Part shown: positions 47,301-51,913 of the stretch, one piece after another | How positions within the stretch are numbered: the first letter of the stretch is position 1 | Layout of the letters: the number at the start of each line of letters is the position of its first letter | From: Auanema rhodensis | Lineage: Eukaryota; Animalia; Nematoda | Reading direction: 5' to 3' | Assembly (NCBI GenBank): GCA_964057225.1 | Contig: OZ059899.1 | Location: 5,952,001-6,016,000 of the forward strand | DNA: 64,000 nt | Position numbers and translations under genes: made by a program | The notes under the pieces: generated by a model | Told to the model about the DNA's origin: nothing | Seen by the model: only the letters and a program-made list of their open reading frames with translations | Database searches by the model: none

Positions 47301-50089
47301 GAACCCTTAGGAATACCTGCTTATACAAATCCATTTTTTCTTGGGGCATGTCATGAGGCTGTCCTAACGGTGGTAGTTCATCGAATTTTTTAAGATATTC
47401 TTTCAACTAGACATATATAATATGAGATACAGTATATAGATCAGTAACTTACATCATTTGCTAGAGGCTTGGCATTAAATGGTAATCCAGTAGGGAGGTC
47501 TGGAAGAGTTAAAGCCTCTAAGACAGGAGGTATATAGAAGGGCTAAAGAAAAATATGATTAAATCAAATCTATCTCTATAAATATACTTGAGGAGGAATC
47601 ACAACAGGACGAGCAAAAGAAATTTTAATAGGCTCGTTCTTGATTTCTAAACCGTGTTGAAGAGCAGCAATTGCTCTATCAGCATCTGTTCGTGATCTGA
47701 AACAATTTTCTTAGATTTTAAATTCCAAAGAGCTATCACATATATGCAACAAATCCACATAAATGATCTCTCCTCTTCTCTTCTTCAGTTCTTGGATAGA
47801 GAATTTTAGCCGATGCCAAAGGCCCAAATGATCCAAAAGTTTCCATAATATCTTGCATTGTAACCTTTATATGTAAATTTTACATTCATAAATACTGTAT
47901 AACTAACATCTAAGGGCAAATTGCAAACATATAAATTTGTAGTATAAGGATCATCATCGAATTCTCCTGTTCCAACATATGGCTTATCTAAAGCTGGGGC
48001 AATCCTAAAATGTGGCAATAAAATACATGTTTCAAGTTGATAATCAGAGGCTAATAAGTTTTATGAACATTGAAACTTTAAAAAGTTGTAAAGCTGAAAA
48101 AAAAGCAATGGAGTCTCACTACTGTTAAAGTTTCACTTAGTTCTTCTAATGTCTCTCAACTTTAGCTGTGACCCACGAATAAAAAAAAATCACGTCGAAC
48201 AAACGAACGGGTTTTCCCATGCATTCGAAATCATATAAAAGTGGAAAGGGCTGCCAAAAGACATCGAATCATCCACCATGGATTACGATAGCAAAATCAC
48301 GGTAAGTAAACATAATTTAATCGACTCTGAAAATTTCCGTATTTCCAGGCCTACCGCTTCGTCGGCTATGCTGCTGTTTCTTTCTCTGTAATCTCTGTTC
48401 TCTCCATCTGCATTACCTTGCCAATGGTACAAAATTATGTTGACGACTACAGAAGCCATGTCAACGCTGAACTTCGCCAATGCGAACTCACCACTCAAAC
48501 CATCCTTTCTCAAGCTTTCATTGTAAAGGTAATTGTAATCGGCAATTACTTTGAAATTCACTTCAAATTTTCAGGACAAACCAAGCAACCGTACTGCCCG
48601 TCAAGTTGATACTGAAGGATACGGAGGATATGGAGGATCAAGCGGTTATGGAGGATATGGTGCTCCAGCTATCGGAATTGAAGACTTCGAAGAGCAACAA
48701 CAACAGCAATGTACTGGATGCTGCTTGCCAGGAGCTCCAGGACCACAAGGACGTCCAGGAACTCCAGGAACCCCAGGACGCCCAGGAGCTGCTGGACTTC
48801 CAGGAAACCCAGGAAAACCACCACAACAACCATGTGAGCCACAAACTCCACCACCCTGCAAGCCATGCCCACAAGGACCAGCTGGAGCTCCAGGAGCCCC
48901 AGGACCACGCGGAAATCCAGGAGTTCCAGGAACCCCAGGACAAAAGGGACCAGACGGAGAGAGAGGACAACCAGGACCAAGAGGAACTGATGGACACCCA
49001 GGAGCCCCAGGAGCCCCAGGAGCTAAGGGACATCCAGGAGCCCCAGCTCCACACGGAACACCAAAGCCAGGAGCTCCAGGAGCCCCAGGACCAAAGGGAC
49101 AACCAGGACCACGTGGACCAGCTGGACACCCAGGAAAGGACGGTTCCCCAGGAGCCCCAGGAGAGAAGGGACCAAGCGGTCAACCAGGAGCCCCAGGAAA
49201 TGACGGAATTCCAGGAGAGCCAGGAATGCCAGGAAAAGACGGAGTCGAAGGAGAGAAGGGAATCTGCCCCAAGTACTGTGCCCTCGACGGAGGAATCTTC
49301 TTCGATGACGGAAGCCGCCGTTAAATTGTATTTCATGGTTGAATGTTTTTGTTCAAATAAAGTTTTCGTTTTTAAGTATATCATACCTATCAAGAGCAGA
49401 TGAATCAACACCCATTTCATTACGTAAATGATCACGTAAACCTTTTCGTTTATCTCTTTCTTCTTGTACACTAAAAGTATTCAATTATATAAGAAGTAAT
49501 TATGAAAAAGATACCGCTTTAACTCTTCTTTAAAATCATCTAGATTACTAGTTTTACTTTTCTTGGACTTGTCAGCACCAGGGCGTTGAGGGCGTTGAAC
49601 TGGTTTTGCTGTAGACGGAGCCACAACAGCAGGAGCTGGGAGCCCTTTTTCACGATGGGCATCCGCCAGCATTTTACGTGCCTGCATAATACTATCATGA
49701 ATTTGGCTAATTGTACTATTTAACCTTTTCTGCCGCTAACCGCTTAGCTTCTTCAAACGATTTAGCTGTTGAAGGAAGATTCATCTTAATTGGAACAACA
49801 GGCTCTGGCTTATACAAGGCTGTTTTTGACGAACTTGACGAAACTTCAAATAATATGTAATTTGAAAAAACTGATCATTACAAACTTGTCTTGTTATTTT
49901 CTACAATATCTCCTCGGATAAATGCTTTACCAGCTGGATTTGATACAACATCTCCACCAAAGTCATCTTGAAACCTTTGGAGCACTCTGGACATCTCCTC
50001 TTCTTCTTCCTCTTGCTACAAATATAGCATAATATAACAATATATATTATTTCATATGAACATACTTTACGTTTTCGATTTTTATCCAT
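44334..50089 (-). CDS. U2SURP: U2 snRNP-associated SURP protein SR140 (RRM, SURP, CID, cwf21, RS domain)
   Basis: [58 protein letters not shown] domain [45 protein letters not shown] domain [19 protein letters not shown] repeats, [16 protein letters not shown], and an RD/RS tail ending [10 protein letters not shown]. Confidence 0.93.
48166..48240 (+). promoter_or_regulatory. Collagen copy 1 proximal promoter (CTGTGACC, AACGGGTTT, TATAAAA)
   Basis: The same motifs occur at nearly the same spacing upstream of collagen copy 2. Confidence 0.55.
48278..49324 (+). CDS. Nematode cuticle collagen (copy 1), nested antisense in a U2SURP intron
   Basis: MDYDSKIT|[27 protein letters not shown]..., RTAR cleavage motif, CTGCCLPG, Gly-X-Y blocks with [14 protein letters not shown] interruption, C-terminus [24 protein letters not shown]. 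Confidence 0.95.
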
Positions 50090-50775
50090 TTCGAACTGTA
50101 ATGTATAATTTATTAAAAAAAACTTAAAATAAAAGATTGTTAAATATTTCAGGACGAGTAACCAGAAATTACAAAATAAAAAATATTTTTTGTTCATATT
50201 TATTGAATAATGGTTTACATGATCATACATTGATACATTTGAAAAAAAGTATTTCAAGACAAAAATCAGAGAAGAACACTGGTTTCAGAAAAATCAAATA
50301 AACTTTTCAGTTCATTCATGGAACTTTTAAAGCACAGTATCTGAAATATAGCATTGATATGAAAAATCACTAATTATTATTACATTTACTAGAATAGGTT
50401 CAGAGCAAACTTTTTTTCTTTCAAATTACCCTTAGCTTCACATTTCATTTTTGTAACTCGACCAACCATATATTTAAAAAAAATGTTATTGATTTAATGC
50501 AGCTAAGAAATCAAACGCTTTTGGAACTTCTCATTAAGGTTATTATATTTTTTTTAAATATTGGCAATAAATGATTGCGCGTGTAGGTTTCACTCGTAAG
50601 ATTCATGATACATCAAACTAAAAGATGGATAAAAACGAACGACAAAGCTACATCACAATCATTCCGTTTGCTATAAAATTAATGTTAAATTTGACCTCCC
50701 TTCCAAAAAACATTCCATTTGGGCATAGTTTTTTATGTTTCATCCTGTCACAAGCTTTTCAGTACCAAAGGCAAA

Positions 50776-50856
50776 CTGTGACCTGTGAAAACAAAAACGG
50801 ACATTGAATACAACAGGAAAACGGGTTTCAGTATAAAAACATTAATCGTATATAAG
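50776..50856 (+). promoter_or_regulatory. Collagen copy 2 proximal promoter (CTGTGACC, AACGGGTTT, TATAA)
   Basis: Motifs are shared with the copy 1 promoter while the surrounding sequence has diverged. Confidence 0.55.
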
Positions 50857-50893
50857 GAATCCGTCAAGAACAGAACAATATCATTTCAGTAAC

Positions 50894-51913
50894 ATGGACT
50901 ACGATTCTAAAATCACGGTAACAGTTACAAATACACTTTTTAGCTCCAACATTATTTTCCAGGCTTATCGCTTCGTCGGCTATGCTGCTGTTTCTTTCTC
51001 TGTAATCTCTGTTCTCTCCATCTGCATTACCTTGCCAATGGTACAAAATTATGTTGACGACTACAGAAGCCATGTCAACGCTGAACTTCGCCAATGTCAG
51101 ATGTCTACAGAAAACATCTTGAACTCAGCTTTAAACGTGAGAATATCCTCTTAACTGTAGAATATACAGAATTGCTTTTAGGTAGCACCACATAACCGTA
51201 CTGCTCGTCACGCTACCATGGCACAAAAGGTTAACTACAACACATATTCTGCTTCTTACGGATCACCAGCTGCTGTTATGGAGTATGAAGAACAACAGTG
51301 TAATGGATGCTGCTTGCCAGGAGCTCCAGGACCACAAGGACGTCCAGGAACTCCAGGAACCCCAGGACGCCCAGGAGCTGCTGGACTTCCAGGAAACCCA
51401 GGAAAACCACCACAACAACCATGTGAGCCACTAACTCCACCACCATGCAAGCCATGCCCACAAGGACCAGCTGGAGCTCCAGGAGCCCCAGGACCACGCG
51501 GAAATCCAGGAGTTCCAGGAACCCCAGGACAAAAGGGACCAGACGGAGAGAGAGGACAACCAGGACCAAGAGGAACTGATGGACACCCAGGAGCCCCAGG
51601 AGCCCCAGGAGCTAAGGGACATCCAGGAGCCCCAGCTCCACACGGAACACCAAAGCCAGGAGCTCCAGGAGCCCCAGGACCAAAGGGACAACCAGGACCA
51701 CGTGGGCCAGCTGGACACCCAGGAAAGGACGGTTCCCCAGGAGCCCCAGGAGAGAAGGGACCAAGCGGTCAACCAGGAGCCCCAGGAAATGACGGAATTC
51801 CAGGAGAGCCAGGAATGCCAGGAAAAGACGGAGTCGAAGGAGAGAAGGGAATCTGCCCCAAGTACTGTGCCCTCGACGGAGGAATCTTCTTCGATGACGG
51901 AAGCCGCCGTTAA
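50894..51913 (+). CDS. Nematode cuticle collagen (copy 2), paralog of 48278-49324
   Basis: Same three-exon structure. The Gly-X-Y and C-terminal region is essentially identical to copy 1. Confidence 0.95.

Follow-up and report, generated by a model that had tools for sequence, protein, structure and literature searches.

Two cuticle collagen genes of the nematode Auanema rhodensis have very probably been kept alike by interlocus gene conversion. They lie on the plus strand at 48278-51913 of a 64,000-nt stretch of contig OZ059899.1 (positions 5,952,001 to 6,016,000; hereafter the window, whose own numbering is used below). The two genes would be old tandem paralogues in which two coding tracts were homogenised, whereas the introns, the flanks, and the remaining coding sequence diverged. 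The pair was mapped by repeat finding, direct reading, and MAFFT alignment, and both genes have an identical three-exon layout. An earlier sequence-only reading of the window had placed them on the same strand about 2.6 kb apart, which agrees with the gene models obtained here (copy 1, 48278-49324; copy 2, 50894-51913). That reading had also described the start and first exons of an opposite-strand gene, U2SURP (SR140), as lying between the direct repeats; the tblastn map and the alignment to orthologues confirmed this, with five exons in that position.

Mosaic similarity of the two collagen genes

All protein searches were run on single exons. Pfam matches above the cut-off were obtained in both copies for PF01484 and PF01391 (Table 1), giving a Col_cuticle_N domain followed by Gly-X-Y repeats. 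In copy 1, exon 3 comprises an RTAR cleavage motif, a Gly/Tyr-rich pro-region, the Gly-X-Y helix, the C-terminus, and the stop codon; in copy 2, the RTAR motif, the helix, and the C-terminus are as in copy 1 and the pro-region is different. The NRTAR, CxGCC, CEPxTPPPCxPC, and ICPKYC motifs were invariant in an alignment of seven paralogues, and both copies carry them.

Comparison of the two genes segment by segment gave a sharply uneven picture. Nucleotide identity was 0.83 in exon 1, 0.985 over the first 134 nt of exon 2, and 0.995 in the Gly-X-Y/C-terminal block, versus 0.52 in intron 1, 0.48 in the exon 2 tail, 0.47 in each of intron 2 and the pro-region, 0.39 in the upstream 200 nt, and 0.41 in the downstream 200 nt; the shuffled control gave 0.36, with a maximum of 0.44. 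The divergence that the sequence-only reading had noticed at exon 1 silent sites and in both introns, the pro-region, and the UTRs was thus borne out by segment identities and by synonymous divergence (dS, below), and the flanks and the exon 2 tail are to be added to the diverged parts. Its estimates of the similar parts were also close: the exon 2 identity of about 130 bp is an exact run of 128 nt (tract A), and the near-identical block of about 610 bp measures 611 nt (tract B), ends 1 nt past the stop codon, and contains exactly the three substitutions that had been listed. These are 48843 A/T (CAA/CTA, Gln/Leu), which is the sole replacement, and two silent differences, 48856 C/A (CCC/CCA) and 49117 A/G (GGA/GGG). 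When the 160 differing columns were redistributed over the 1052-column gene alignment in 10000 permutations, the longest identical run averaged 34 and never exceeded 80, so that none of the 10000 reached 128; the observed identical runs were 260, 207, 128, and 128.

Silent sites point to gene conversion

The contrast was most telling at silent sites. The eight residues encoded by exon 1 are the same in the two genes although 4 of its 24 nucleotides differ, none of them altering an amino acid, and dS is about 0.97, a value obtained with the Nei-Gojobori (NG86) method, which splits the three-base AGC/TCT serine change into two replacement steps and one silent step. Across the ten codons 5′ of tract A (exon 1 plus exon 2 codons 1-2), six nucleotide differences, all silent, fall in four codons. 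Both of the first two codons of exon 2 are silently different, whereas the following 42 codons, with 29 synonymous sites, are free of differences (dS = 0). In tract B (202 codons), dS was 0.012 over 164 synonymous sites and the replacement divergence (dN) was 0.002. If the count is limited to positions where the two copies specify one and the same amino acid, differing codons number 14 of 32 outside the tracts and 2 of 241 within them (Fisher p = 5e-13).

In principle, the blocks could be kept alike with no conversion at all, by purifying selection on the helix together with the extreme bias in codon usage of collagens that are highly expressed. Codon bias is indeed strong in this family: where distant paralogues have the same residue, they use the same codon in 84-91% of cases. 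These paralogues served as a codon-bias control, with 9-16% differing codons at such positions of the helix. If the rate most favourable to this explanation, 9%, is taken, the probability of finding two or fewer differing codons among 241 is still 4e-8. In exon 2, 59% of the same-residue codons differ among distant paralogues versus 0 of 41 in tract A. Moreover, amino acid identity of the helix block is 201 of 202 between the two copies, whereas the nearest paralogues reach 130-137 of about 200. The silent-site tests therefore rule out this explanation, to which we attach next to no probability. With codon bias and selection both rejected, interlocus conversion between tandem paralogues of old origin is strongly favoured. 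The proposal of the sequence-only reading, an old duplication whose coding blocks were kept alike by exon-limited conversion, is in this respect supported by both the mosaic identity and a silent-site contrast that goes beyond codon bias.

Three points weigh against conversion as the explanation. The inference rests on one genome; the two sequences fit either one patchy event or two tracts and fix neither the number of events nor their direction; and a polishing artefact within the blocks is formally possible. The last would arise if reads of one copy had been used to correct the other, and the blocks do exceed short-read length and would draw multi-mapping reads. Three differences nevertheless persist inside tract B, and the block edges match coding features (the third codon of exon 2 and the stop codon) rather than read-length or repeat-collapse boundaries. 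Furthermore, each copy sits in unique, unrelated flanks in an assembly of 112 contigs, and no extra haplotig copy was found. An assembly or polishing artefact is thus very improbable, and gene conversion is retained below.

Origin and history of the pair

In the searched genome (a single genome of 181 Mb), the nearest other paralogues showed 69-74% nucleotide and 55-64% amino acid identity. Its HSP70 was closest, among annotated proteins, to that of Auanema (88%) and then of Caenorhabditis (81%), as befits a rhabditid, and no close congener turned up in the protein database. A protein word search with collagen exon 3, which was swamped by Gly-X-Y words, returned no match above 64% identity and none with a similar N-domain. 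The position of intron 2, four codons before the NRTAR motif, is common to both copies and different in L006, the closest outside paralogue. In addition, two short motifs, CTGTGACC and AACGGGTTT, occur upstream of both copies at nearly matching distances, embedded in otherwise unalignable DNA. Because they share the intron 2 position and the two promoter motifs at matching distances, the copies are true sisters. CTGTGACC was found nowhere else in the window and AACGGGTTT only once more, and the motif pair was not seen upstream of eight other collagen paralogues, apart from one TGTGACC. Both are probably conserved promoter elements, and the TGACC core presumably resembles a nuclear-receptor half-site.

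The following history would account for these data. A unit consisting of a cuticle collagen gene and about 190 bp of its promoter was very probably duplicated locally long ago, leaving one copy in intron 5 of U2SURP on the opposite strand and the other 804 bp upstream of the U2SURP start codon. Divergence to near saturation would then have followed in the non-coding DNA, at the silent sites of exon 1, in the exon 2 tail, and in the non-helical region of the N-terminus. Two stretches still similar enough to pair, namely in exon 2 the Col_cuticle_N part and in exon 3 the Gly-X-Y helix with the C-terminus, would have been overwritten by non-reciprocal copying, the last time recently, as suggested by a dS of about 0.012. 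The tracts would stop where homology had already decayed: the intron and the pro-region form such limits, as does the position 1 nt past the stop codon. Homology decay may accordingly be what sets the tract ends. The outcome would be two collagens that are alike in their transmembrane/N-domain, helix, and C-terminus but not in promoter context or in the non-helical N-terminal segment that remains once RxxR has been cleaved, which suggests a functional split between the copies.

The three differences inside tract B bear on what happened after the last overwriting. At the Gln/Leu site, the aligned five paralogues carry Ile, Met, or Val, so that Leu in copy 2 probably came first and Gln in copy 1 arose later. 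The CCC and GGG codons, being unpreferred, are probably also new. If a Caenorhabditis-like mutation rate of roughly 2-3e-9 per site per generation is assumed, a dS of 0.012 would put the last homogenisation, as a rough estimate, a few million generations ago.

The U2SURP gene between the copies

The minus-strand gene is a U2SURP/SR140 orthologue that extends over about 45081-50089. Its SURP module (Pfam PF01805, E = 3.2e-18) and cwf21 domain (PF08312, E = 3.9e-6) were identified, and an open reading frame (ORF) of RDRSRE repeats at 45078-45278 provides the Arg/Ser-rich C-terminus. With single short exons as queries, the RRM gave only a weak fragment (E = 0.08) and the CID had no Pfam match; both regions are collinear with the U2SURP proteins of Pristionchus and Thelazia in the tblastn map. 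In a protein search with the SURP exon, the top full-length matches were the U2SURP proteins of Thelazia, Pristionchus, Globodera, and Steinernema, together with a Halicephalobus protein without a name that aligns like them. No Caenorhabditis or Auanema protein stood among the ten best named U2SURP representatives; these genera may have no close U2SURP, or their proteins may sit inside other 50% clusters.

The 5′ exons were left open by the domain and structure scans, as Pfam gave no matches for the U2SURP 5′ exons and a PDB sequence search gave none for exons 2, 4, and 5; their identity was therefore taken from the alignment to nematode U2SURP. Exons 1-6 match the N-terminal parts of nematode orthologues in the same order, and the 5′ exons are bounded by GT-AG and agree in phase. 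The Pristionchus U2SURP map runs collinearly from 49982 to 45340 and jumps from 49389 to 48003 across the collagen. Copy 1 does lie antisense inside a U2SURP intron, as the sequence-only reading had stated, but the limits given there for this intron (48004-49514, about 1.5 kb) were too wide. They presupposed that no exon lies between 49514 and 48004, and an 84-nt exon 5 had been missed. This exon also aligns to four other nematode orthologues, and its phase joins exon 4 to exon 6. The corrected host intron 5 measures 1382 nt versus 42-50 nt for U2SURP introns 1-4. On the other side, copy 2 had been placed correctly upstream of the U2SURP ATG; the two genes are divergently transcribed. The AATAAA signal of copy 1 lies only 26 nt from the exon 5 donor of the opposite strand, so that the collagen transcript must end at, or enter, the host exon.

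The SURP exon and the whole spacer between the collagens each occur once in the genome, and U2SURP is thus a single-copy gene. Relics of a duplicated U2SURP 5′ region were found neither downstream of copy 2 nor elsewhere, and the detectable duplicated unit is the collagen gene with short promoter footprints.

Two further features were observed in the spacer. The sequence TTACAG, 6 nt upstream of the U2SURP ATG (50090-50101), could be a trans-splice acceptor. An AT-rich inverted repeat with 30-nt arms that are 80% complementary occupies 50470-50561, in the region shared by U2SURP and copy 2.

Table 1. Positions of the collagen, U2SURP, conversion-tract, and promoter features in the window
Feature	Positions	Strand	Evidence or remark
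Collagen copy 1 exon 1	48278-48301	+	8 codons, MDYDSKIT; ATG and GTAAGT donor
Collagen copy 1 exon 2	48349-48528	+	Col_cuticle_N, PF01484, E = 3.7e-12; preceded by TTTCCAG acceptor
Collagen copy 1 exon 3	48575-49324	+	Collagen, PF01391, E = 1.1e-23; ORF; aligned with paralogues
AATAAA poly(A) signal of copy 1	49356-49361	+	close to U2SURP exon 5 donor
Collagen copy 2 exon 1	50894-50917	+	reading, alignment
Collagen copy 2 exon 2	50963-51136	+	Col_cuticle_N, PF01484, E = 5.6e-14
Collagen copy 2 exon 3	51182-51913	+	Collagen, PF01391, E = 1.2e-26; paralogue alignment
Conversion tract A, copy 1 (putative)	48355-48482	+	partner 50969-51096; 128 nt, no differences
Conversion tract A, copy 2 (putative)	50969-51096	+	repeat finding, alignment
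Conversion tract B, copy 1 (putative)	48715-49325	+	partner 51304-51914; 611 nt, 3 differences
Conversion tract B, copy 2 (putative)	51304-51914	+	repeat finding, alignment
Promoter footprints of copy 1, CTGTGACC and AACGGGTTT	48166-48173, 48206-48214	+	TATA-like box close by (about 48245)
Promoter footprints of copy 2, CTGTGACC and AACGGGTTT	50776-50783, 50820-50828	+	almost same distance from gene as in copy 1
U2SURP exon 1	50066-50089	-	ATG at 50089; aligns to Thelazia U2SURP residues 1-8
U2SURP exon 2	49886-50015	-	aligns to Pristionchus residues 20-62 and Thelazia residues 9-48
U2SURP exon 3	49725-49843	-	aligns to Pristionchus residues 62-105
U2SURP exon 4	49515-49681	-	64% identical to Pristionchus residues 106-163, E = 3e-20
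U2SURP exon 5	49387-49470	-	84 nt; aligns to Pristionchus residues 165-191, E = 2e-8
U2SURP intron 5, host of collagen copy 1	48005-49386	-	1382 nt; GT 49386-49385, AG 48006-48005
U2SURP exon 6	from 48004 downwards	-	aligns in order to orthologue N-termini
Rest of U2SURP (RRM, SURP, CID-like region, cwf21, Arg/Ser-rich tail)	45081-48004	-	3′ end approximate

Does the arrangement protect the duplication?

If the 611-nt repeats recombined by unequal crossover or single-strand annealing, a single hybrid collagen would remain and about 2.6 kb, with the U2SURP promoter and exons 1-5, would be deleted. The idea that the pair persists and keeps converting because only non-crossover outcomes survive is a valid corollary of this geometry and is logically sound. 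The geometry itself agrees with it, with exons 1-5 and the 804-bp upstream region enclosed by the repeats, and so does the presence of a single SURP exon and a single spacer in the genome. Knock-down of U2SURP in human cells markedly lowers viability (bioRxiv 10.1101/2024.10.23.619792). However, such a lock closes only one route of loss, as point mutations and small indels stay open, and the differences between the copies in promoter and N-terminal segment would suffice to keep both. Near-identical collagen neighbours are, in addition, common in this genome with no lock of this kind: at least five other sets of two or three show 99.4-100% identity over 1.0-1.7 kb, among them head-to-tail units that lack a spacer and inverted ones. 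Because their non-coding DNA is identical too, these sets may simply be young, and they neither prove nor disprove the lock. Literature searches retrieved nothing specific on a nematode U2SURP phenotype and nothing specific on the principle of an essential gene between direct repeats.

Taken together, it is unlikely that the loss of U2SURP sequence is what maintains the pair and its conversion. The wider proposition, in which the U2SURP 5′ exons act as a recombination filter whose lethal crossover and annealing products let a converted pair outlive ordinary tandem pairs, is equally doubtful. If true, gene order itself would stabilise a duplicate, which could be tested across nematode genomes. 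The topology offers a concrete case for asking whether essential neighbour genes bias the fate of tandem duplicates, as an idea and not as a result.

Comparison with known systems

Concerted evolution of tandem cuticle collagens is already known. According to PMC3966223, which summarises Park and Kramer 1990, the C. elegans collagens col-12 and col-13 are arranged in tandem 1.8 kb apart, with ORFs that are 99.5% identical and flanks that are unrelated, and they are read there as an old duplication followed by gene conversion. The present genes are similar in being same-strand neighbours about 2 kb apart with about 99.5% coding identity and essentially unrelated flanks, in appearing to be an old duplication homogenised by conversion, and in having copies that differ in the 5′ end and in expression context. 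The identity of col-12/col-13 extends over the full ORF and takes in an intron, whereas here both introns are left out, as are about 230 nt of coding sequence from the exon 2 tail and the pro-region, so that two separate tracts result; the spacer, unlike that of col-12/col-13, holds the start of another gene. The distinguishing features are the two tracts that exclude introns and pro-region and their position around the start of another gene. The present collagens belong to another subfamily than col-12/13, and orthology is not claimed.

Conversion between Caenorhabditis paralogues has been described for hsp-16, act-1/act-3, and fog-2/ftr-1 (PMC3966223). Introns usually lack the degree of homology that conversion requires (PMC3966223, section 4.2), and the loss of homology at tract ends, the usual explanation of exon-limited conversion, fits the tracts found here. 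As in those cases (PMC3966223), where paralogues may lie in either orientation, the genes are nearby and the tracts span a few hundred bases; and, as in fog-2/ftr-1 (PMC3966223), the conversion-resistant region would mark functional divergence. The present inference differs in being drawn from one genome rather than from population or mutation-accumulation data.

Copy 1 also resembles other genes nested in nematode introns in being a complete, independently promoted gene on the opposite strand of a long host intron; it differs from them in the closeness of its poly(A) signal to the donor of host exon 5 and in having a paralogue on the other side of the host start. The pair represents a clean single-genome case of exon-limited concerted evolution, as the tract edges are sharp and an internal control is built in: the silent sites of exon 1 are saturated, while those 50 nt further on are untouched. 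It would be useful as a teaching case and cautions against relying on dS to date collagen duplicates.

Other observations in the genome

The near-identical collagen pairs and triples, in which the identity includes non-coding DNA, are L018 (C4), L020 (C8), L021 (C3), L022 (C4), and L023 (C5). L020 and L023 are inverted pairs, the latter 100% identical over 1170 nt, and L021 consists of head-to-tail collagen units with no spacer. Another inverted collagen pair, L019, showed a patchy identity of 84%/94%. Between the two near-identical collagen copies of L018, a 64-aa ORF (L018:4339-4533, minus strand) was judged by eye to be a candidate fragment of an adenovirus-type cysteine protease; Maverick/Polinton elements carry a protease of this type.

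Five HSP70 genes with identical scores are arranged in tandem at about 3.2-kb spacing at C5:15313560-15329144 (L011-L015), one of them inverted relative to the other four. In the window itself, a 196-aa ORF on the minus strand (5059-5649) consists of a cysteine-containing N-terminal part followed by a long run of Ser-Gly-Glu-Glu repeats.

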